Origin: Macrostomum lignano
Lineage: Eukaryota
Assembly: GCA_002269645.1 (NCBI GenBank)
Contig: NIVC01000146.1
Coordinates: 310,001 to 374,000, forward strand
Reading direction: 5' to 3'
DNA: 64,000 nt
Shown: positions 20,682-61,467 of the stretch, piece after piece
Layout of the letters: every line of letters starts with the position of its first letter
Numbering within the stretch: position 1 is the first letter of the stretch
Notes under the pieces: generated by a model
The model's input: the letters and a program-made list of their open reading frames with translations, nothing else
What the model was told of the DNA's origin: nothing
The model's database searches: none
Program-made: the position numbers and the translations under genes

Positions 20682-21932
20682 TCACGTGAGCTGCGCCGCC
20701 AGACGCTGAACCCGGCTCAGGCCGTCCATGTAGTTGAACAACTGCTTCAAGAACTCCTCGTCGTTGACGGCGCCTTCGACTCCGCTGCCGCCGCCGCCGC
20801 CGCCGCTGCACACGATCAGATTGCTGATGCCGTTGATGCCGGCCCGGAAGTACGCCTCCAGCCGGCGCAAGTGGCGCAGCAGCTGCGCGTTGTCCACGCC
20901 GGCCGGACAGGAGGCGGCCAGGCGGTTTGTCATCAAATTCTGCGGCTGCTGCGGCAGCGGCGGAGGGGGCGGCGGCGGCGGCATGGCGGATAAGTCGGCG
21001 GCGTAAGCGCGCAATGGCGGCGGCTGCTGCTGCAGCTGGTGCGGCGGGGCCACCCCCGAGGCGATGGCGGCGCTCAGCATGGCGAGAAACTCCGGGCTGT
21101 TCAACGCGGCCACGCTGCCGCCACCGGAAGACATGTTCAAGCCTGCGAGCTGCTGAACACTCGGATGACACGGCTGATGCTGCTGCGGCAGCCTCGGTGG
21201 CGGCGGCGGCGGCGGCATCGGTATCGGAAAGGCGGCAGTCGGGGAGTCCAGCGGGTCGACCGAGGCCACATTCAACAGGCTGCCGGATGTCGGGGCGGCC
21301 TCCTCGTCATCGCCGTCGCTGTCAACGATAACGTCCTCGTCCGCCGCCTCGTCCGTCTGCTGCTGCAGCTCCTCATCTTCGGCTTCGTCTGCAACGCTGG
21401 AATGCCGCGGTCGCTTCAGCGGGGAGTCGCCGCCGCCGCCGCCATCGTCCAGTTGCCGAGGCGTCAGCGGCCATTTGACTGCGACTTCGGTCGGGGTCCC
21501 CGACGCCTGGTAGTCAGCTGAGAAATACTCGTCCTGCCCGGCAGGCGGGTGGCTGTGGAACCGGCAGGCCGTGACGCGGCGCACGGAGAGCAGCCGCCTG
21601 CCGATGCTGATGGCCGTGGCCGGACAGAACCGCTTGCTGCAGCGCCAGAACACCCGGCCGTCCTTGCCTGATCGGCTCTCCGTCATCTTGTAGCCGTCGA
21701 TCACGATGCTTTCCTTGTTCTTGCGGGTCACGTCCCACTTGACGCTGACTATGCCGCGGGCCTCGGCACATCGACGCTCGACAACGTCTGGACGATCGCT
21801 GGCGGCGCGTTCGGGCCGATGATCGGTGTGTCGAACAGGCTGGGAGTGCGGTCGGTTCTGCTGCTGAACCGTCAGATCCAGCGCGTCTGACAGCATGGGG
21901 TCTTCGCCCACCTGATGCTGCGGCTGCTTCAT
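20682..21932 (-). CDS. FLYWCH-type zinc-finger protein, ~416 aa, single coding exon
   Basis: Open GC-rich frame containing IVIDGYKM...VFWRCSKRFC-x22-HSH (FLYWCH pattern), with acidic and Pro/Gln low-complexity tracts. First ATG is at 21932, an in-frame acceptor (ttttccccAG) lies at 21990, and AATAAA lies 28 nt past the stop. The ORF track start at 22037 is a TTG. Confidence 0.85.
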   Translation of the reverse strand: MKQPQHQVGEDPMLSDALDLTVQQQNRPHSQPVRHTDHRPERAASDRPDVVERRCAEARGIVSVKWDVTRKNKESIVIDGYKMTESRSGKDGRVFWRCSKRFCPATAISIGRRLLSVRRVTACRFHSHPPAGQDEYFSADYQASGTPTEVAVKWPLTPRQLDDGGGGGDSPLKRPRHSSVADEAEDEELQQQTDEAADEDVIVDSDGDDEEAAPTSGSLLNVASVDPLDSPTAAFPIPMPPPPPPPRLPQQHQPCHPSVQQLAGLNMSSGGGSVAALNSPEFLAMLSAAIASGVAPPHQLQQQPPPLRAYAADLSAMPPPPPPPPLPQQPQNLMTNRLAASCPAGVDNAQLLRHLRRLEAYFRAGINGISNLIVCSGGGGGGSGVEGAVNDEEFLKQLFNYMDGLSRVQRLAAQLT

Positions 21933-22969
21933 CGCTGCTGGAACCTGCGTCGATTCGGTCGAATTCGCCGACGTTCTTGTCCCGGTTTTCTGGGGAAAAT
22001 TGTCAACGAATTTCGCAATGGCCGCAATGGCGTGCAAGGTTGGCTGCGTTCAGGGCGTCTTAGGGCTTTGGAGGGAGGGTTTGTCCTCCGAATACACCGC
22101 TGTGATATGAACTTGGCTCCCAGACTATATCTCTCTCTCTCTCCAACAGAGCCTGTCAAAAGCGGCTGAGGCTCTGGCGGGAGGAGGTTGGGGCCTCTGG
22201 CGAAAAAAACTGCTTTGCACGGAATTCTCTCTCCCGCTGTGTGTTGCCCTGCCGGCCCACCGCCGACCAATCCGGTTCCTGAAGCGAACCCCCAGCGCAT
22301 TCAGACCTTTTTAAAGTGGGTCTTTGTTCCGGCTGGGCCCCACCCACCCCCCCCCCCTCCATCGGTTGTGGGAGCCGCCAACTTAGCCATACTTACTGCT
22401 ACTACTATGACTGCTACGTAAGTTTTTTAAAGGAGGCCGGGTGGGTTGGACGGCTCCCACGACGGAGTTTAATACGGACTTGTGGGGGGGGGGGTAGGGA
22501 GAGGGGCCGAGCATCAATATAGTCAAATTCTTGTCTCGACCCGCTATCAACCCATTCGTATCAGTTTGTCTAAGCGAGGACGAAAAGAAAAAAGAGTTCT
22601 GTGTGTGTGTGCCTGTCCGTGTGTTCGTGTGTGTGTGTGTGCTTCCAACACACATCCGGGTGCTGCGTTCTTGAATGCTGTACGAGTACGATGTGTTCAG
22701 GTATCGCTTTCTTAATACCGAAATTTCACAATGCCCAAAGACACCTGCCTTCACAAGACCGAAAATTATTTTTCTAAAAGAGCATAGAAACTATTGGAGG
22801 CTGGGGCTATGCAATAAAACGATGAAAAAATTATTAATTATGTCGATGATTATTAAAATCAAAACTATTTTCAACAATCGACAAACTTGAATTATACCCG
22901 TTATTCTTACTATTGTCCTTCTGTTGTGCGCTGTCTTAGATTTAAACTAGGTTAAAGTTCATTACGAGC

Positions 22970-47900: not shown

Positions 47901-50900
47901 GCCGAGCAGGTGGAACACGGTGCCGCTGGGAGACACGATCACTGGCTGGGTGGTGCGGGCCTCCGGGACCTGCAGGTTCAGGATGAACACCGAGCCCACG
48001 GAGGTGCCGACCCACAGGCAGGGCGTTGCCTGAGCGTCTGCAATGTGCAGGGTTCTTGTTGTAGTGCATGTCCTGAACTGCCGCTCCCTCCAGTCCTGAA
48101 CTGCCGCTCCCTCCAGTCCTGAACTGCCGCTCCCTCCAGTCCTGAACTGCCGCTCCCTCCAGTCCTGAACTGCCGCTCCCTCCAGTCCTGAACTGCCGCT
48201 CCCTCCAGTCCTGAACTGCCGCTCCCTCCAGTCCTGAACTGCCGCTCCCTCCAGTCCTGAACTGCCGCTCCCTCCAGTCCTGAACTGCCGCTCCCTCCAG
48301 TCCTGAACTGCCGCTCCCTCCAGTCCTGATCCTGAACTGCCGCTCCCTCCAGTCCTGATCCTGAACTGCCGCTCCCTCCAGTCCTGATCCTGAACTGCCG
48401 CTCCCTCCAGTCCTGAACTGCCGCTCCCTCCAGTCCTGAACTGCCGCTCCCTCCAGTCCTGAACTGCCGCTCCCTCCAGTCCTAAACTGCCGCTCCCTCC
48501 AGTCCCTCACCTGACTTCCTGGCGAAGGTGTCGGCAAAGGCCAAAAACAGCACGGACTCCTTGCTGGGGTCGAGGCTGCTGGTGCTGGAGCTGCAGGATC
48601 TTGAGAAGTTCTCTGGCTTCTCTGCAGTAAAAAAGTGGCCAGTTGAGTTGAACTTGGGTTTGTACTTCGAATTTCTGTCAAATGTTGCAACTTCAATCTC
48701 CTAAATAATAGCGAAATGCTTCGCACAACATTTACTTTGGGCAAAGTAGCCAGTCAACACTTAAAAGCTCGGGTAACATACGGAAACAAGAAATGGAATT
48801 TAATTAGGTGAGAACTCGTCCTCAATTTGATTTCAACCTCACTGCCCTGGCTGACGAAGAGAATAATTGCACCAAGATTCGTGAGGTTCTTCTTTTACAT
48901 AACTTAAAATTTGAAACTTCGTTTTTTTCATTAAAAAAGGATTTTGGAAAAAATCCACTGCATTTTATATATCCTGATAAATCCCCCATATCTAATCCCC
49001 AACCCTATCCCTAATCCCCAACTATATCCCTAATCCCCAACCCTAACCCAATCCCCAACCCTATTCCTAATCCCCAACCCTATCCCTAATCCCCAACTAT
49101 ATCCCTAATCCCCAACCCTAACTCAATCCCCAACCCTATCCCTAATCCCCAACCCTATCCCTAATCCCCAACCCTATCCCTAATCCCCAACCCTATCCCT
49201 AATCCCCAACTATATCCCTAATCCCCTACTATATCCCTAATCCCCAACCCTAACTCAATCCCCAACCCTATCCCTAATCCCCAACCCTATCCCTAATCCC
49301 CAACCCTATCCCTAATCCCCAACTATATCCCTAATCCCCAACCCTAACCCAATCCCCAACCCTATCCCTAATCCCCAACCCTATCCCTAATCCCCAACCC
49401 TATCCCTAATCCCCAACTATATCCCTAATCCCCAACCCTAACCCAATCCCCAACCCTATTCCTAATCCCCAACCCTATCCCTAATCCCCAATCCTATCCC
49501 TAATCCCCAACCACCCCAATCCTATTCATAATCACCAACCTACCCCTAATCCCCAACTCTATCCCTAATCCCCAACCCTACCCCTAATTCCCAACCCTAC
49601 CCCTAATCCCCAACCTGCTCCCTAATCCCCAACCCTACCCCTAATTCCCAACCCTACCCCTAATCCCCAACCTGCTCCCTAATCCCCAACCCTACCCCTA
49701 ATCCCCAACCCTATCTCTGCTGAGCACAAGACATTTCATTTTTCAGCCCAAGTGCAAATAGCCCGTCTACTAAATAAGTAGCGAGAAACGAAAACGAAAG
49801 CAATAAAATAAGCGCAAACAGCCCAGGAGCCACCCCGGGGGTCCAACTAAAAAAACAAGGCGCGGCGGGCGGGTTGGCCGAGCCAGAAGGCGATCGTGCG
49901 CGGAGGCGGACAAAACGAGCGGAACGCCAAAAGTGACGACAGAACGCTGACACGGACGGTGACCGACGGACCGGACGTGACGACAAACGCGGCGCGAAAA
50001 CAAGCGAAAGCTGAAGGAAACGAGAGGCACAGAAGTAAATGAGGAATTCTGGGACGGGGCCTCCGTCGTCCGTTCACAACCTAGCGAGGCGTGGCTGCTC
50101 AGCCTGCCGGCGAAGGGGGACGGCGCGGCCAAGGAATTCGAGGTGCCGGCCGGCCCGCCCTGCATCGACGAGGGCGGCTCCTCTAAACTACGGGCGGTGG
50201 AGATGCAGCTGCCGCCAGCACCGCCGCCGGGACTCAGCTGCGAGGACCCCCTAGCGGCCCTGCCAACGGCCTGACCTTGGCTGCGGGCCCGCATCAGGTC
50301 CGCGCTGCGGGTGCCGGCCGGGCCGGGCGACGCTGCCGCTGCTGCCGCCGCCGCTGCCGCCGCCGCAGAGGAAGACGCCGACGATGAGCTGACGGTGTCC
50401 GTGCGCCGGGTGAACCGGCCGCCTCCGCCGCCGCCGCCGCTGCCGGCTGACATGCCGTTCATCTGGAGGGGATAAATGGGGCTGGATTAGGGAACTGAAG
50501 TATAGAGCGGCAGTTCTAAGAATTCACTGTTGTGTCCGACTGACAGCCCTGATTAATGATCAAGTGAAACGCACTGGAACAGCAAAAATGAATCATTGCT
50601 GATTCTTCAACTTGAACATTGCAGCCCTAACATTTGATATTCTCTAGAGATTGTCATGCACAGTGTTTATGCTGACTGATCCATTGCAATGCAATTGCTT
50701 TGAGTGGGGAGGGAGTAGACAACACAAAAAGCTCGTCATTATAGAGGGGCTGATCAGCTGTCTATGGCAAAAGCCACTCTACAGTCCCTGCAGAAAAAGC
50801 GTGCGGACTGTTGCGGAGGCTTAGGGAGTCAGACAGCAGGGCTCTGACCGGAGGGTTAGAGAGTTTATTAGCCTAGCAGCCTGGGCTAAGGTAGTGGGCG

Positions 50901-53900
50901 ATTTAATTGGCACAACGCATAGCGGAGATCATGAGTTGAATATCAACAGTTTAGCTAGATAAGACTTTACCGATGCATTCGGCATCCAATGTGCAACCGA
51001 AAGTTATAGTGTCGTTGTAAATCTAGTATAACTTGTAGAATTTACTAATATAGGATCTGGTTAATTTATAATCTGATCAGTATAATCTAGTTAATCTAGA
51101 ACCTGGTTAATATATAACCTAATTAGTCTAGAACCTGGTTAATCTAGAACCAGGTTGATCTAGAACCTGGTTAATTTGAAACCTGGCTAACCTAGAACCC
51201 GGTTGATCTAAAACCTGTTTGATCTAGAACCTGATTAATCTAGAACCTGGTTGATCTAGAACCTGGTTGATCTAGAACCTGGTTAATCTAGAACCTGGTT
51301 GATATGGAACCTGGTTAATCTAGAACCCGGCTAATCTAGAACCCGGTTGATCTAAAACCTGGTTGATCTAGAACCTGGTTAATCTAGAACCAGATTAATC
51401 TAGAACCCGGTTGATCTAAAACCTGTTTGATCTAGAACCCGGTTGATCTAAAACCTGGTTGATCTAGAACCTGGTTAATCTAGAACCTGGTTTATCTAGA
51501 ACCTGGTTGATCTATTTATTTCCTAAGCTAGAACTTTGTAAATCTACAACTTGTGTAAATTTCAACCTTACGAATCTGCACTCATGTTAATCTGGAGTGT
51601 ATACAGCATGGTTGGAAATTAGCTAATTAGGCAGTAAATTAGTTACGAGGACTGAGGGAGTCACGCGGTGAGCGACAATGGCGGTGCCAAAACGGGGAAG
51701 AAAACGCACGCAAATTTCTGGCTGGTGTTCAAAGCTCTGCTTGTTATCCTATTGGGGGGTGACTGTCAGACTCAATATACAAACTCGGTCGCGATGCGAT
51801 ATCATCCCGCATTTATGCGAGATGTTTACGTCAGACTTTATGTAGAAAATTTAAAAATCTTGAAAATCATAGGAAAGACTTGAGAAAAGCTGCGAATTTG
51901 AGACGGAAAGAGAGAGAGAGAAAGGAGAGAGCGAGAGTGAGAGGCGCCGGCCCACCTGGGCTGCCTTGTCGACAATGCAGTGCCATTTGGCCTGCGTCCG
52001 TTGCTTCTTCGTCTGCTTCGACTGCAACAAATTTGAGTAGAAGGCGATGGCACTGGTGAGGAGGACGGTTGATTGATTGCTGTGCGATTGGGGAATTCTT
52101 GTGCACCAAGCGAGGGGTTTTCCAAATACATGTAGGGGAATCCTCATAGATACGAGCTACTTGGGGAATTCATATGGTTACCGGGGAATTCCCTATGTTT
52201 ACGGGAATCCTCGTAGCTATGGCGGCAATCTCCATGGCTACGAGAATGAGGGATTTCCCAGGTTGCGCAGAATCACCATGGCTACGGGGAATCCCATGGT
52301 TACTGGGGAATCCCTATGGTTCCGGGAATTCCGATAGCTCCATGGTTACAAGAATGAGGGATTCCCTATTGCTGCACACAATCGCCATGGCTATGAGGAA
52401 TCCCATGGTTACTGGGGAATCCCTATGGTTCCGGGAATTCCGATAGCTCCATGGTTACAAGAATGAGGGATTCCCCAGAGTTGCGCAGAATCACCATGGC
52501 TACGGGGAATCCCATGGTTACTGGAAAATCCCTATGGTTTCGGGAATTCCGATAGCTCCTTGGTTACAAGAATGAGGGATTCCCTATTGCTGCACAGAAT
52601 CACCATGGCTACGGGGAATCCCTCTAGGGGGGAATCCCAATGATTACGGGAATTTTTTTGGGTTCGGAAAAATACAACATAGTGGCAGGGAATTGACCAA
52701 AAAACAGGACTTGCTGGCTGCCAATAGCAAAGACCGAACACAGGGGGTGATTCCCTGGCTATACAATCTTGGATTTGGGACTTGGGGAAAAATGGGATTT
52801 CAATATGAAGCGGAATGAATTTGGAGCTCTGTGGTTTTGGAGTGTCGAATGGTAAGCAAAAAAATTAAAATGTTTTGCATGTTTAATGGACTGACGATAC
52901 TGCCTGGCCATGCAGGTCTCTAACACATTTTGACTTTGGTTCAAATTGACGCACACGGCATGAGTGACAAGTTGCACAATGCACTGAACAGCTGGTAGAG
53001 GACAGTTCGGGGTTTCAACAATTATTTTTAAAAAAACTTGGCAGTTAAAAAATCCGAGTTCAAAGTGATAGTGTGCTCATAAGTCACATGGGTAGGAAAT
53101 GACAATTACTATTTAATATACACTGCTCATAATTCAATTTGCAAAGTACGGAGCTGCCAGCATCCGATCAGAGTTGGCACCCGAAACCCCCATTATTCAC
53201 ACGCGGGAACCGAATCAATGGAGCAAACAAAGCACAAAAAAGGCAATTTTCTGGGGGGATAAGGAAGGCTCTCTTAGCCAAGCAGCGATGCAGCATGGGG
53301 CCTGACCTTGGACGCCTTGGTGACGAGCGACAGCCATCTGGACTTCGCCCGGCCGCTCTCCTCGTGCTGCTCCCATGGTTGGTTATTGGTTAAAGAAGAA
53401 GAAGAGAGAAAATGTAGGGTTTTGAGCAGGCGGACAATGCGCCGTTATTTTTCCGGAGAAATTCAGTGCGCACAAAACTCGTTTTAGTTTCAATTAAAAC
53501 AAAACAAGTTTAATAAAACAGTATTGCTCGAGGCGTCAATCTACGGTTAGGAAAATTGTTAACTGTATTGGTAATTTAAATTGATTTGAAAAAATTAACA
53601 AAATGATTGTAGCTCGCATTGTAATTAAATTATTATGCGACAAAACCGTAGCGAGTACAGAGAGAAGCACTATTAATATTAAGATAGGAAATATTGCATT
53701 CGGCTTGGCTGTACTGCCTCGGGTGATGTTAGAGCGATGGTGAGCTTCGATGTCGAAAGAAAAAAAGATGCTATTGGATAAGACATCTGCGTTTTTGAGT
53801 AAAGCTTTATAGCAATCAGTAAACAATTCAATTGTAGAGAATCGATTTATCTAAACAATTTTGACAATTTTAAGTCCCTAGAAACGGGATTTCCCTTGGA

Positions 53901-56900
53901 AACGGGATTTTCTTCGGAAACGGGATTTCCCTTGAAATCGGGATTTCCTTTAGAAACGGGATTTCCTTAGTAAATGGGATTCGCCTTGCAAATTGGATTT
54001 CATAGGATTTCCCTTGGAAATGGGATTTCCCTTGGAAATGGGATTTCCCTTGGAAATGGGATTTCCCTTGGAAATGGGATTTCCCTTGGAAATGGGATTT
54101 CCCTTGGAAATGGGATTTCCCTTGGAAATGGGATTTCCCTTGGAAATGGGATTTCCCTTGGAAATGGGATTTCCCTTGGAAATGGGATTTCCCTTGGAAA
54201 TGGGATTTCCCTTGGAAATGGGATTTCCCTTGGAAATGGGATTTCCCTTGGAAATGGGATTTCCCTTGGAAACAGGATTTCCCTCGGAAATTGGATTTCC
54301 CTTGGAAACGTGATTCCTTCGGCAACGGGATTTCCTTTGGAAACGGGGTAAATATTTAGACCGACTGTAGGACTGACTCGATTCCTGTGTCTCATCAAGC
54401 ACGCGTGTGTAATGTAGGATTCCAAAATCTCCGTTCTCAAGTTTTCAAAGCGAATCAGCAGCTCCGTAAAGAGATTAAAATCTGAGAGTTAATATCGGTT
54501 CAAAAGACCGACATCTGTGCCCAGGTTTACAGGGCTAGCTAAGCAAGTCTTTAATCAGCTTTTTTTAAATGGAGTTTAGTTCCGGATTAGTAAACTAAGA
54601 AGATTGCTTGAGGCGGATGTGCCAGTGGATATTTATAAAATTCAGCGATTAAAATCTGCTGTATGTTTTCATTTGCTACTTACTGAGTAGTAGATCTCAT
54701 AAAGAGGTTAAACTGGCCTTAAATTGACAACTTCCTCACATTGTAGACTACCGGATAGCAAATGAAGCCACACCAAGCTGGCTCGTCAGTTTTGTTAATA
54801 TTATGTGTTTAATCATTCATAAAACATTTTGATAATTTTTTCCAGCTTTACTCGAATCGTCAAAGTCTAGAAGGTGAGAAATTGTCAATTTTGTCAGTTT
54901 AGTGATGGAATGCTGACCGATCCCTGTCTCTGCTCTGTCAATCCTGGGTTACGGTAAATCTCTATTTCTGCGCCCAATGCTCTCTCGATCCATTTCGCTC
55001 TGTACCTCAGTCGGTCTCAAGTCGATGTTCAGGCATGATTTTGCCTTCATATCGCAGCGCAGATTCCGCAGCGGACGCCGCTTCATCGTTGGCGTCCCCC
55101 AGGCTCCGATGGAGAGCGAGTGGTGCAAGCACTGGCGGTGTGTGCGCGACCAAAGTAAAGTTCTTCCTGTGCTTTAATTTGAACTTAAAACAGCTAATAT
55201 GGATAAGTTCAAGCTTAAACTAAAACTTTATTCTGATCATTTATTGCATCGCTCTAAAAGAAGAGCAACTTTTGAGGTTCGTGCAAGCGATGAACTGGGG
55301 TCCAGTTCATCCGGGAATGTGGAGATTGTGGGGTTGTAGTTGTAGGGGGGTTGTGTGGGCGGTTGGACTGGGGTGGGGTTGTAGGGGGGTTGTGCGGGCG
55401 GTTGGACTGGGGTGGGGTTGTAGGGGGGTTGTGCGGGCGGTTGGACTGGGGTGGGGGTTGTAGGGGGGTTGTGCGGGCGGTTGGACTGGGGTGGGGGTTG
55501 TAGGGGGGTTGTGCGGGCGGTAGGACTGGGGTGGGGGTTTTAGGGGTGTGCGGCCGGTTGGACTGGGGTGGGGTTGTAGGGGGGTTGTGCGGGCGGTTGG
55601 ACTGGGTTGGGGGTAGTAGGGGGTTGTAGGGGTTGTAGGGGCTTGCAAAGACGGTGGACAAGCAACTCCAAACAGCTAGGAATTCAGTGAAGTTAGTGGT
55701 TGGCTTCTAGTTTAGCTTGAAGTATCAATATGAGACCTGTTAGCTTGGGGGATGTGGATTCGAACACTAGTGGAGGCTGTGTGGGGCGAATTCTATAACT
55801 TCGTATGTTGTTTTTAGGAAAACCCAAACCAACAATCGCATGCACTCGCGCCTTACCGAATAACTTTGTCTTGCTTCCCTAATACATAATGCAAGTATTA
55901 AAAGTTAGCATGCAAAACTGAGTTAGGAGCAAGTAGGTGACATGCAATTCTTTCTGCTGCAAAGATGAAGTTATAATATAGAGGAGTTACACTGGATTCT
56001 CTTAAAAATTCAAGGAAAATAATTTAAAAATGAGTTAAAGCACGAGGCTAACAATTCTATGCAGTTTTTGTGTTTAGCAGACCTAGACAGCGCGACTCAC
56101 CTGCTCAGTGCTCTGCTGCCGGTCTTCCTTGCGGGACATCGGCGAACGGGGATTCCTTGAATGCGGATCAACGGACCCTGCAAGCATGAGGAGATGCGTT
56201 GAGGACATCTTTGGGAATCGAAATTTCACAAGCCCGGACGATCTTTGTGCCGATCTTTGTGAGGCTTCTGATTTGCATAATCAGAAGCCTCACTTTCTGA
56301 TTATGCAAATTATGAAAGGATTAAAGTAACCAGCCCTGGGTCCTGAACGAAATGCAGTTCCGAGCTGGTGAAACTTTCAAAAGACGCAGAATTCATGTGC
56401 GCGTAAGATTTGCAAGCAATGGCACACGTACCGTACAGGTCAGGGGTGCATAGAGTCAGTAGGACGCAGGCTTGGACCAAGTCTACCAGACCCACTCCGT
56501 TCTCGTTTCCAATGGCTAGACTGGAATAGTAGAATGGGATGTAGTGATTATGGAATACTATACATGCTTTAATTAGTGCTGACACTGTCAGTGTGTGAAC
56601 TGACGCTAGTGCTGACACTTCAGTGTTTTAACCAACGGAAGTGCTGACACTTTAGTGTGTTAACTAACGTTAGTGCTGACACTTCAGTGTGTTAAGTAAC
56701 GCTAGTGCTGACACTTCAGTGTGTTAGTTAACGCTAGTGCTGACACCAGTGTGTTAAGTAACGCTAGTGCTGACACTTCAGTGTGTTAAGTAACGCTAGT
56801 GCTGACACTCCAGTGTGTTAGTTAACGCTAGTGCTGACACCAGTGTGTTAACTAACGTTAGTGCTGACACTTCAATGTGTTAACTATAACGCTAGTGCTG

Positions 56901-59900
56901 ACACTTCAATGTGTTAACTAACGCTAGTGCTGACACCAGTGTGTTAACTAACGTTAGTGCTGACACTTCAATGTGTTAACTAACGCTAGTGCTGACACCA
57001 GTGTGTTAACTAACGTTAGTGCTGACACTTCAATGTGTTAACTAACGCTAGTGCTGACACTTCAGTGTGTTAATTAACGTTAGTGCTGACACTTCAGTGT
57101 GTTAATTAACGTTAGTGCTGACACTTCAGTGTGTTGATATCCATTAGTGTTGATATAAGCTCAGCCCAGAATGCTCCCAGTTTGCACCAAATTGCAGTTC
57201 TCACTCACATCTGATAGTCGGGCGAGAATCTGGCGCAAGTGACGGGAGGCGGAGGCGCATCCGGGTTGGTGGAGCCAAGCAGGCAGACGAGCTCGGGCTG
57301 GTAGCCGGGACTCCAGCCGCGGCAGCCGCGCCGGACGCTGAGGCCCACAAGCACCTCCTGCGGCGGGGTGATGGCATGAGAATAACAAATTGCAATCTGA
57401 GACAGTTTTGTAAGAAAATTCATCGTAATCTTAACAAAGAAAAGTTTCTTGAAATTCTTTGGAGTAGTTAAGGAAACAAGATTTAAATATTAGCATCTTT
57501 TACATCTTTTAAGTTTTTTTAAGCTATAAAAGTGAGCACTACTCATCTCGCAATTGCACTTTAACGCTATCACGTATAATATATATATATATATATATTA
57601 TAACACCAAACTTGTTATTTATATATATATATGTATCGCAGAAAGCCTTGACCAGTTTAGAAGACAGTTTGTTATAAATAACACTTACAAGGAATATAGC
57701 GCCGTGTTAAGAATTCCACACAAATATACACAGTGACCAGCACTATAAACAGCATTTGTAACTTGGGCTTCAGTCAGCGCTGCTATTGACAATTCTTGAT
57801 TTGAATTGATTTTCTTGAATTTCTATATTTAAATTGATTATTGGCTTGCTCTTACATACACTAACAAATAGACAGACATATAAGAGAGGGAATTAAGTAA
57901 TTTTGCGAAAATCACGAGACTTTCACGAGACAATATAATGATCGGATGAATTAATTCAATTCAATTTTATCCGCGCAAAAGCTGTTAGCGATAATTATGA
58001 AATTAATGGAGACCATGGAGTTTTATATGCAGAATCTGGAGTGGAAACTTACTAGCCAATCATCACTAGCTACTTATCTAATAGTTAGGACTGACTGTAG
58101 TTTGATTTTCGAATTTTATAAAATTCATTTTTCAAACAAAATTTTAATTTTTGGGAGAGTGAGCTCTGGTCTGCATTGGTTTCCTTGCCAGGTTTTGCAT
58201 TTAGAACTACAGGGAGGAGATTTGCTCAAGCGGTAAGTCTGTTTTAATACTAATTCAGTATGATTTAATCTACAAACTATACAAGATCAAGAATAGAGAG
58301 AAGTAGGCATAATATAACTCTTTTTTGCTCTAATATCAGAAGCTTTAATGGCAGAATTTGTTATAATGATATTATATTTTTTGTATTATAAGCAAACTTC
58401 ATTAAAGCAGAAAGATCTGCAGAGAACAAAATCTACTGGTAAATAAACTTATATAAAGGTCATTATGTTATTTTTATTTATAAATAATATGTTTTATAGT
58501 TAATAACTTTTTTATAATGTTAAAGAAGGCTAATTGATGCAATTCAGTTTTCATAAACAGAAGAGAAATAAAAAATCGAGTTATGATTATTTCCACAGTG
58601 CATTATCTTGTTAATTTATAGCATTTGAGTAATAATGATGCTATATTTTGTTAAACTAATTTGGCATCAAATCAACCGATTTGAACTGCAAAATGTAAAT
58701 TGCCAGTTGCAGTGCATTGATAAAATATTCGAGAAACAGATTTAATTAGCTAGTAAAAAATTAGAATAGGTATGTACGATCGGAGAGACGCCATGCCAAC
58801 ACGCAGTTCAGGGTGCATGTCCTTACACAGATACATAGCGTGCCATAAATTACATAATGGCATGTACAGTGGGCGCAGTTCGCTCACCAAGGAACATTCA
58901 CTGACAATGACAGATGCAAGAAGGAATCCATCGAATCGATTAAAGTTAGCAGCTGTTTTATAAATAAACAATCAGATTAAATGCGTAAGCCAGTCATGGG
59001 ATTTGCCTTGCAGCAGGAATTGAACTGACTGGCTCCCTTGCTCTCACATTGAAGCTCTAAAGAGCACCGCAGATACTAGAATAACTAGATAGGCCACTCA
59101 GGCATATATACTTAGCAAAACAGCTTTCTACTTTCAGTTCAGTAGCAATGAAGAATACATAAGCTATTTTATAAGAATAAAGGCAGCTGAGATGACTGAT
59201 AAATTTAGAAGCTTTCAGACTTAAACAGCTTGCTAATTGGTTCAGCCATAATGTACATTAGCCACTGAAATGTACATGGCAGATTTAGGCTGGAACAAGC
59301 GAGGAAGGCAATAAAAATTGGGTGGCGGGGCAGGGGTTGAGGTTCTGTGTGGAGTTTGAGGGGTTTAAGCTTGGTGGGAAAGAGCCAATAAATAAGCTTT
59401 GTTTATAAAAAAACATTTAAATGCTTCAGTTTAACTTACTACTGAACTGAAAGTAGCTTGTACGCAAGTGTTCTGAGTGGCCCATCTACGCTCGTAGCTA
59501 TTCTAGTATCTGTGAAGAGCACTTGAAAGCAAAACAGAAATTTCCCTCCCAACTCCGGGATCTTAACCTTGGCGTGGTGATTTTGAAACACGTCCGAGTG
59601 GAACGGACTCGATGACCGACTTGACGACGAGCCAAACCGAGGTCTCGGCGGCCGCTTCAGGGTGGGCAGGGTGAAGTTAGGGGCAGCGATTTTTAATGAG
59701 ACATCCGCGAATCGCACAATGCTGGCTAGTTAAAACACATTGGTGTTTAGTTTCCCTTAGAAATTTCTGTTTAATACGTGACAGAGATGATATTGCGTCA
59801 TCCGTTTGAGCCGTTTGGGGGCTCTCGTGTATGGAAAGTTGAATATGGCCAACCCACTGAGAATCTGTTTGTCACTAAAGTTTCAAGAAACGTGTCACAA

Positions 59901-61467
59901 TTGTCAAAGTTATGTCCCTTTGTCATTTATAATTTGTCTACAAATGCTACAAAAATTGAGTACAAAAACGGCTTATTTTAGGACATCACACAGTTTCTAC
60001 TTTCAATATTCGACAAGCCAAAATTCAATTTACTAGTACTTGTGACAAGCAACAAACTGTCAAACATTATCAGTTTACATCATCAGTAAACATTATCAGC
60101 TTACATCATCAGTAAACATTATCAGTTTACATCATCAGTAAACATTATCAGCTTACATCATCAGTAAACATGATCAGTTTACATCATCAGTAAACATGAT
60201 CAGTTTACATCATCAGTAAACATTATCAGTTTACATCATCAGTAAACATTATCAGTTTACATCATCAGTGAACATTATCAGCTTACATCATCAGTCAGAT
60301 GCTCGTACGTCTAGATTGAATCTCAGTTTGGATCAACTTGAACTGTATGAGGTATGCAAAATATATCTGCAACGAAAAGCTGTCAACAGAACGCCCGAGT
60401 GCGAATCCCCATAAAGATCTCATACTTTTAAAGAGGTCGACTTGCTGCTAATTATAGTTTGCATGCAAACTGAAAACAATGAAACGTCGAATGCCAATTT
60501 ATTAAAATGCATTGTTTCAAGTGCGCCAACACCCACTATATTTGCCTTTAATGCAAGCGCAAAGCAATCATGTTTTGACAATTGTGGTTGAGGGCAAAAT
60601 TCCTGTGCTTAGCATGCTACTGGTCCGATACTGTTGGTGAGTAGTACACACTAAGTGCATTGAAAAATCCAGCTCATGCAACCAAATAGTTATGCGAGGT
60701 GAAATTGAGGATAAATAGCAAAGGAGAATATTTGGCATTATTGCCTGCTTGATTAGGGTCTGGGGTTTAAATTCTCCCAAGAGTTACGACTGAATTAGTT
60801 GTTCTACCCTACTATACTAATGATAGTAAAGTCCGTATAAAAGCTGCTGAATTTGGCGGATAGGGCAGATTAAAAGGGAAGTCTATTTTTCTAATCAGAG
60901 CTAGATACGAATATGCCAAAACAAAATCTTGAGCAGCTCGACAATTGACACGAACACTCGGCGGCTACCTCGTAATTAAGCCTCACCCGACTCTGCATCA
61001 GTCTCTAAACTCGATTTTAGTTGCCGAAACTACCCAGTGACAAACAAAAGCACCCAGTTAATTGATGGACACGTGGGGCTCGCTGAGTCACTGATGATGC
61101 TGCATGGCTGACAGGCTGGGTAAAAGCAGGGAGGGTTTGAGGAGGGAGGCGCGTGCAGTCACGGGGGCGTGTGATGAAGCATCGGATGCTGGCATACAGA
61201 CGCAGCGCGCGAGCGCGCGAGATTGGCATGTCACCTGATGCTAGAAAGCACCTGGTCTTTCTCCGTGTGTCAGTTCGAAGGATTGCCGCCTTAACATTTC
61301 ATTTCTAATTCACAAAATCTCAGCTTTCCTGAATATCTGGCTGAAATGCAACTAAAGGGAGCTGATAGGAAAACACAGGGTTGGGGTGGGTCGTCATTCG
61401 CACCGAGACTCATGTTGGTTCAGGTGACTCACCCGGTCCGGAGGCTGCTTTGGCGAGCCTGCGGCAA

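Follow-up and report, generated by a model that had tools for sequence, protein, structure and literature searches.

Organization of the tomosyn locus

The 64,000-nucleotide stretch of Macrostomum lignano DNA analysed here (contig NIVC01000146.1, positions 310,001 to 374,000; referred to as the window, with coordinates counted from its first nucleotide) carries a tomosyn gene on the minus strand. One intron of this gene contains three short intervals, called A, B and X in this report. Judged by their sequence, it is reasonably likely that all three are alternative cassette exons that preserve the frame and belong to the disordered variable loop of Macrostomum tomosyn.

The gene product combines an Lgl-type propeller with a C-terminal R-SNARE. 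The exon 62266-61693 (minus strand) matches the propellers of LLGL2 and LLGL1 with E=1e-16, and the last exon (42236-41964, minus strand) contains a Pfam Synaptobrevin domain with 37.5 bits against a cut-off of 26.4. The nearest relatives in the databases are STXBP5 (syntaxin-binding protein 5) sequences. The rebuilt exon chain comprises 62266-61693, 61579-c.61436, 57357-57209, 56520-56431, 56177-56101, 50462-50081, 48621-48511 and 48037-47557. The phase of every donor agrees with that of the following acceptor.

The constitutive exon 56101..56177 (minus strand) closes the conserved ...LYG-SVDPHSRNPRSPMSRKEDRQQSTEQ segment. Its phase is set by the preceding exon, which ends in ...CTGTACG before the donor gtacgt (phase 1), and the exon itself ends in phase 0 with ...RSPMSRKEDRQQSTEQ before the donor gtgagt. 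The encoded peptide aligns to vertebrate ...LYGSNDPYRREPRSPRK and to residues 560-648 of LLGL1. The intron that follows (50463..56100, minus strand; 5,638 nt) contains X, A and B and is termed the variable-loop intron. It has phase 0, as the unbroken phases of six neighbouring exons show. Downstream lies the low-complexity variable-loop exon 50081..50462 (minus strand), which encodes MNGMSAGSGGGGGGGRF...DLMRARSQGQ..., starts in phase 0 and ends in phase 1. Its acceptor cctccag is followed by ATGAACGGC (ATGAAC...). The motif [DE]L[KM]R[AS]RSQG of this exon is also present in the M. lignano protein P0014 and in P0013 of Dreissena.

Three probable cassette exons in the variable-loop intron

Exon A (53307..53369 or 53307..53366, minus strand) encodes (Q)HEESGRAKSRWLSLVTKASK, has a length of 63 or 60 nt and phases 0-0, and is followed by the donor gtcagg. 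Its acceptor is a tandem NAGNAG at 53366-53371 (gggAG/CAG/CAC, with slashes at the alternative borders), and the choice of AG adds or omits one Gln. Exon B (51956..52021, minus strand; 66 nt, phases 0-0) encodes SKQTKKQRTQAKWHCIVDKAAQ and is flanked by the acceptor ttgttgcag and the donor gtgggc. Exon X (55006..55131, minus strand; 126 nt, phases 0-0) encodes CLHHSLSIGAWGTPTMKRRPLRNLRCDMKAKSCLNIDLRPTE and is bounded by gccag/TGC at the 5' end and GAG/gtacag at the 3' end. Its peptide (CLHHS...LRCD-x-K-x-KSC...) is another basic segment.

The borders of A, B and X are canonical (AG/GT), and the reading frame is kept whether an exon is included or skipped. Since the intron has phase 0 and the exons phases 0-0, A and B can each enter or leave the transcript without breaking the frame. 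They are 1.3 kb apart, and joint inclusion is possible. An alignment with vertebrate, mollusc and arthropod tomosyns places A, B and X in the loop that follows the RSP-x-RK motif and precedes FSRS-x-SSS. A preliminary description of this DNA had reported two AG/GT-bounded frames of phase 0-0 in the tomosyn intron, and both are found where it placed them. It overlooked exon X, which is better conserved than either. The same description had assigned the site to the variable loop in which vertebrate isoforms differ, in agreement with database sequences that occur with and without the b-type and m-type inserts.

The term microexon that had been used for A and B is not appropriate in its usual sense. 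With 60-66 nt (A and B) and 126 nt (X) the exons exceed the usual limit of 27-51 nt; exons of the neural microexon programme (SRRM4/eMIC) have at most 27 nt or, in the most generous definition, 51 nt. UGC motifs near the 3' splice site are present at -31 and -5 of exon B, while there is none within 58 nt of that of exon A. No Rbfox motif (GCAUG) lies in the 300 nt on either side of any of the three exons or of the paralogue exons described below.

Conservation in a paralogous tomosyn gene

The M. lignano tomosyn paralogue P0175 (PAA82513.1; contig NIVC01000465.1, region L001) served as comparator, with the equivalent intron at L001 16319-21655. P0175 and the window gene share about 85% identity in conserved exons and only about 37% in the variable loop. 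At this locus dS, the synonymous divergence, is at least 1.2 and the introns are unalignable with those of the window gene. P0175 is an old paralogue and as such useful for comparison. At the DNA level, alignment of intron against intron yields weak, AT-rich matches only; the match at A amounts to 69% over 39 nt (E=1.8).

Exon X is the best conserved island between the two introns (tblastn, E=3.8e-7), with in-frame indels of 1, 4 and 2 codons. Its counterpart in L001 (18308-18454; 147 nt) reads gtgcag/TGT...GAG/gttaga. A further counterpart is found at about 5142-5288 of L002, a second copy of the paralogue. The AG/GT splice sites of X are retained in all three loci, and its conserved residues are encoded with synonymous differences.

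The paralogue intron also contains an A-like exon (L001 19490-19567; 78 nt, phases 0-0; cacacag/TGC...AAG/gttgtt) that encodes CPSPETAKKRTATLSRWLQIFNSASK. It ends in ...SRWLQIFNSASK directly before GT, with the Trp 9 codons before the donor as in A. Among 305 open 14-mers followed by GT, this exon end is the best match for the end of A (p=0.0005). The same exon is also the best of the 305 donor-anchored candidates for B (p=0.0185). The DNA identity of A and the A-like exon is about 67%, and conserved codons differ synonymously (TCC/TCT, CTG/CTT), which indicates conservation at the protein level and argues against recent gene conversion.

A core is common to A, B and the paralogue exon: basic residues are followed by W-x-x-[LI]-[VF]-x-x-A-x-x, which ends exactly at the donor. 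The net charges are +3 (A), +5 (B) and +4 (paralogue exon). In addition, KK(Q)RT of B recurs in the N-terminal half of the paralogue exon and SRWL...ASK of A in its C-terminal half. The relation of A and B to each other and to one exon of a diverged paralogue points to an exon family under purifying selection, with a tandem duplication in the lineage of the window gene. On comparison of the sequences, it is very probable that A is a genuine exon under selection, and B probably arose from an exon of this type by a tandem duplication specific to the lineage. Together with X, the loop appears to have at least three optional exons.

In L002 the A-like exon lies inside a run of 352 nt with 100% identity (L001 19250-19601 and about 7005-7356 of L002), which extends approximately 240 nt upstream of the exon; elsewhere in the intron the identity of these two loci is 92-96%. 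The run could result from conserved splicing-regulatory sequence, from local gene conversion or from an effect of the assembly.

A second A-like site in the paralogue intron (ML-1, L001 18142-18183; AKSLWSSLHSDASK) was rejected. It shares 9 of 14 residues with A but lacks a donor in phase where the alignment ends, and L002 has preserved neither its acceptor nor the AKSL residues. From these features ML-1 is probably a decayed relic or a chance match. The paralogue models P0175 and P0014 use different loop exons (SHNRQHTHQ... and ...ELKRARSQGQ..., respectively), and the paralogue loop is therefore either alternatively spliced or mis-annotated.

Comparison with chance expectation

Splice-bounded frames alone are common in this intron, which holds 126 open AG..GT intervals of phase 0 with a length of at least 60 nt. 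A Trp codon followed by nine open codons and GT is expected about 1.8 times and is seen twice (the intron contains 45 TGG triplets). The preliminary description had stressed that A and B both end 9 codons after the Trp. They do, but given this chance rate the distance is not independent evidence and counts only as part of the donor-anchored alignment. The similarity of A and B, in contrast, is beyond chance. Their best ungapped BLOSUM62 score is 32, which has p=0.002 over all registers in composition-preserving shuffles, and none of 3000 shuffles reaches the donor-anchored score. The relationship of the two exons that had been suggested earlier is made probable by this value and by the donor-anchored comparison, in which one exon of the paralogue is the best match for both.

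Tandem repeats account for about 30% of the variable-loop intron (arrays of 18 bp x26, 16 bp x27, 109 bp x4 and 39 bp x7). The only unique, GC-rich and coding-like islands outside these repeats are A, B and X, with a G+C content at third codon positions (GC3) of 0.95, 0.82 and 0.76, respectively. By codon usage A has the top score of the intron on the sense strand (23 bits), followed by B (11.8 bits). This score is blind to the strand: the antisense sequence of every island scores equally high, and for this reason the score is used only as a mark of compositional islands. In the neighbouring 4.1-kb intron the same screen picks 59654-59592, which is probably a genuine exon; hence the islands seem to track exons.

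The interval 59592-59654 (minus strand) is a unique, GC-rich AG..GT interval of 63 nt with phases 0-0 that encodes RPPRPRFGSSSSRSSSPFHSD. It fits the phase between the exon that ends near 61436 and the one starting at 57357, and it resembles ...IGFSASFGSPKLASEK of P0175. According to these sequence features it is probably a further tomosyn exon.

Weighing of alternative explanations

Several observations weigh against A, B and X being cassette exons that encode helices. The pyrimidine tract of exon A lies 24-45 nt upstream of the acceptor and scores poorly on a generic matrix. The codon score has the strand ambiguity described above. For B the paralogue offers no counterpart of its own, only the exon that A also matches, and the annotated model P0175 skips both X and the A-like exon. 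Moreover, the conservation test compares paralogues within one species and not genes between species. Searches of protein databases with the exon peptides found no spliced product containing them; this negative is weak because only cluster representatives were searched, with very few M. lignano tomosyn sequences among them. As to the helices, single-sequence models of AlphaFold2 tend to render short peptides helical, and the hydrophobic moments of the exon peptides (0.43-0.55), although equal to that of the Munc13-1 peptide, do not significantly exceed those of shuffled sequences.

A and/or B might accordingly be chance open frames in GC-rich intronic islands, with any conservation belonging to a non-coding element of splicing or transcription. 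The abundance of splice-bounded frames, the chance rate of Trp plus nine codons plus GT, the equal antisense score, the omission of the A-like exon from P0175 and the missing counterpart of B are in line with this, as is the perfect identity in L002, which is not limited to the A-like exon but reaches 240 nt upstream. Conserved flanking intron sequence is, on the other hand, typical of regulated alternative exons. Against a non-coding origin, A matches its paralogue counterpart at the protein level and in the sense frame up to the exact GT, with DNA identity of only about 67% and synonymous changes, and X has indels of whole codons and AG/GT borders in three loci. Furthermore, an Rfam scan of the intron gave no family match and thus no sign of a snoRNA or another known RNA in the intron, and there are no dispersed-repeat copies. 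We consider this explanation unlikely. The result so far is probably three unannotated alternative exons in M. lignano tomosyn, to which a hypothesis is added.

This hypothesis concerns optional helices. The loop projects from the WD40 propellers, and each included exon of the A/B type would add a basic amphipathic helix of about 20 residues. In single-sequence AlphaFold2 models exon A is helical over its whole length, with a predicted local distance difference test score (pLDDT) of about 83 at the centre, and exon B is helical with a pLDDT of 84-91. The face formed by positions i, i+3, i+4 and i+7 (Trp, Leu/Ile, Val/Phe and Ala) may serve as a docking surface. Splicing would then set the number of docking helices (0, 1 or 2) in the regulatory loop of a release inhibitor. 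Candidate partners of the helix are calmodulin, an acidic membrane or an intramolecular site.

For the membrane, the model is the sister family Lgl, whose loop is membrane-binding. By analogy with the loop of Lgl that is regulated by atypical protein kinase C (aPKC), the exons could form a polybasic amphipathic segment that binds membranes or phosphoinositides and is possibly switched by phosphorylation; exon inclusion would then tune how tightly tomosyn attaches to vesicles or the plasma membrane. The point at which the exons are inserted and the start of the polybasic loop in Lgl are homologous positions (tomosyn ...PRSPMSRKEDRQQSTEQ, LLGL1 ...EGPLSRVKSLKKSLRQ; phmmer with 8r3y_L, E=0.0018). 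The alignment to LLGL1 residues 560-648 in 8r3y_L ends at SRVKSLKKSLRQ, opposite SRKEDRQQSTEQ of tomosyn. The exons have net charges of +3 to +5, an interfacial Trp and a hydrophobic face, features that are also typical of membrane anchors at the interface. Additionally, Ser or Thr residues lie 2-4 residues before the Trp in a basic context (RAKS-R-W, KKRTATLS-R-W, KQRT), and a mammalian alternative exon of the same loop carries sites for protein kinase A (PKA) and SUMO (PMC3948876). However, the basic charge is modest beside that of the Lgl loop, A, B and the paralogue exon share no conserved phospho-acceptor, and in the tomosyn papers considered a functional polybasic region is described only at the C-terminus (PMC10965968). 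We hold such a segment to be rather improbable, although it may rival calmodulin binding on equal terms.

The preliminary description had instead favoured calmodulin: A and B would be Ca2+/calmodulin-binding sites of the Munc13-1 type, with a Trp anchor and 1-5-8 spacing, and splicing would provide a tunable calmodulin switch. The Munc13-1 peptide that it quoted is exact (RAKANWLRAFNKV..., chain B of PDB entry 2KDU), and the resemblance of A to this site is suggestive in a direct comparison. Ungapped, RAKSRWLSLVTKA of A scores 32 against RAKANWLRAFNKV (shuffle p=0.004), and A is the only 13-mer to reach this score among 109,355 positions in the peptides from six-frame open reading frames (ORFs) of the window and L001. 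The conserved positions of the exon family (W1, [VF]5 and A8) correspond to the Munc13 anchors 1, 5 and 8 of the 1-5-8(-26) motif, which in Munc13-1 and ubMunc13-2 has Trp at position 1 (PMC7017353). WLQIFN in the paralogue exon parallels WLRAFN in Munc13-1, and the net charge of +3 to +5 and the predicted helix are likewise in favour. The match was, however, chosen post hoc from a large space of known motifs, and phmmer, run with the A+B peptide on all chains of the PDB, 2KDU_B among them, gave nothing at E<=10. A, B and the paralogue exon all have Ala, a small and weak anchor, at position 8; B alone is not significantly similar to Munc13 (p=0.09); and only 10 helix residues follow the Trp before the exon ends. 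An anchor at position 26 is absent. Joining A to B puts the second Trp at 23, and joining A or B to the downstream exon supplies no Trp but only MNGM at positions 11-14. The spacing W/i+3/i+4/i+7 is moreover generic for any amphipathic helix, and no report of calmodulin binding by tomosyn was recognised in the top-ranked literature that mentions both words. If A and B were both included, their Trp residues at 1 and 23 could together make up a two-part site that recalls the 1-5-8-26 arrangement of Munc13. Taken together, calmodulin sites of the Munc13-1 type in A and B are possible but quite improbable. That tomosyn gains, by splicing, one or two Munc13-like, Trp-anchored calmodulin-binding helices in its regulatory loop would likewise be a long shot.

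Comparison with known loop exons

The optional exons proposed for M. lignano tomosyn have parallels in the same protein family. Seven isoforms arise in mammals from the unique variable domain of tomosyn (PMC3948876), and the s, m, b and xb isoforms of tomosyn-1 and -2 are attributed to Groffen et al. 2005, as cited there. Like the flatworm exons, the vertebrate loop exons are frame-preserving cassettes that encode short basic segments in the same loop, after ...LYG..RSPRK and before FSRSRSSS. Examples are the b-type insert ...KMNNFIEKVKTKSRKFSKMVAND... in P0007 and the m-type insert AKMSRKLSLPTDLKPDL in P0008 and P0009. Vertebrate loop exons also carry regulatory sites, namely for PKA and for SUMO (K730). 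In sequence there is no detectable homology (shuffle p=0.17 for the vertebrate b-insert with A and p=0.73 with B). The vertebrate inserts contain no Trp, whereas the flatworm exons share the W-x2-[LI]-[VF]-x2-A core that ends at the donor.

A wider homology of loop segments across phyla was considered and rejected. By eye, a pattern [RK]-V-[DS]-x-K-x-K is seen in insect WKTFNLKRQLSKVDLKLKA, gastropod FFRKVSVKLKS and the vertebrate b-insert FIEKVKTKSRKF. With a hidden Markov model of seven loop segments from vertebrates, molluscs and arthropods, X, A and B ranked no better than 371st of 1,618 six-frame ORFs. The pattern W-x2-[LIVMFC]-[LIVMF]-x2-[AGS] was found in the loop of none of the loop-spanning tomosyns of other phyla retrieved by a HMMER search from P0014.

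In Drosophila tomosyn, the mutually exclusive exons 13A and 13B encode a loop that protrudes from the WD40 core (PMC8612732). They resemble A and B in being a pair of alternative exons at one site in a protruding WD40 loop, a likeness drawn from the published description. Exons 13A and 13B are mutually exclusive; A and B, both of phases 0-0, may be included jointly.

The helix of the Munc13-1 site (PDB entry 2KDU) is basic, as is the helix predicted for exon A, with which it has RAK-x-x-WL-x4-K in common; its Trp is at position 1, and positions 5 and 8 are hydrophobic. Both Munc13 and tomosyn regulate vesicle priming. Munc13-1 is, however, an unrelated, non-homologous protein, and the flatworm exons have Ala at position 8 and lack the anchor at position 26. 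The loop of Lgl (LLGL1/2; PDB entries 8R3Y and 6N8P) occupies the homologous position in a double propeller and is a basic regulatory loop. It differs from the flatworm segments in being constitutive and more highly charged and in its repeated aPKC serine sites, whereas the flatworm segments are optional, with a hydrophobic face centred on Trp. No conserved serine pattern of the aPKC type is evident by eye in the flatworm exons. As far as the sequences allow a classification, the flatworm exons belong with the known tomosyn loop exons by position and logic and not by sequence homology.

Other features of the window

Tandem Repeats Finder masks 36% of the whole window, with arrays for example at 53881-54347, 51090-51514, 52230-52654 and 55339-55627. 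Many of the tandem arrays of the window give rise to long spurious ORFs in all frames. Close downstream of the donor of exon 50081..50462, a GC-rich, coding-like island is present at 49857-49976; its score is 12 bits on the strand of the gene and 33 bits on the other. The UniRef entry P0178 from M. lignano, named 'SpoU_methylase domain-containing protein', is a tomosyn fragment that consists of two exons and then intron. It is identical to two exons of the window and shows one difference in its read-through into the window intron. Downstream of tomosyn, a frame of 455 codons (20685-22049, minus strand; GC3 0.81) encodes a FLYWCH zinc finger (Pfam, 24.7 bits against a cut-off of 23.6). This frame is either a separate gene or a domesticated or transposon-derived ORF.

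Implications for tomosyn function

Tomosyn determines release probability and short-term plasticity. Splicing in vertebrates and flies diversifies the protein in its loop, which is also modified by PKA and SUMO, and what the loop binds is poorly understood. An exon family kept in two long-diverged paralogues is a concrete and mutable candidate for a docking element in this loop. If the partner is a membrane, the mechanism of the Lgl polybasic loop would be extended to tomosyn. If it is calmodulin, Ca2+ sensing and the inhibition of priming would be linked; an activator and an inhibitor of priming would then respond to residual Ca2+ via the same sensor, with the dose set by splicing.

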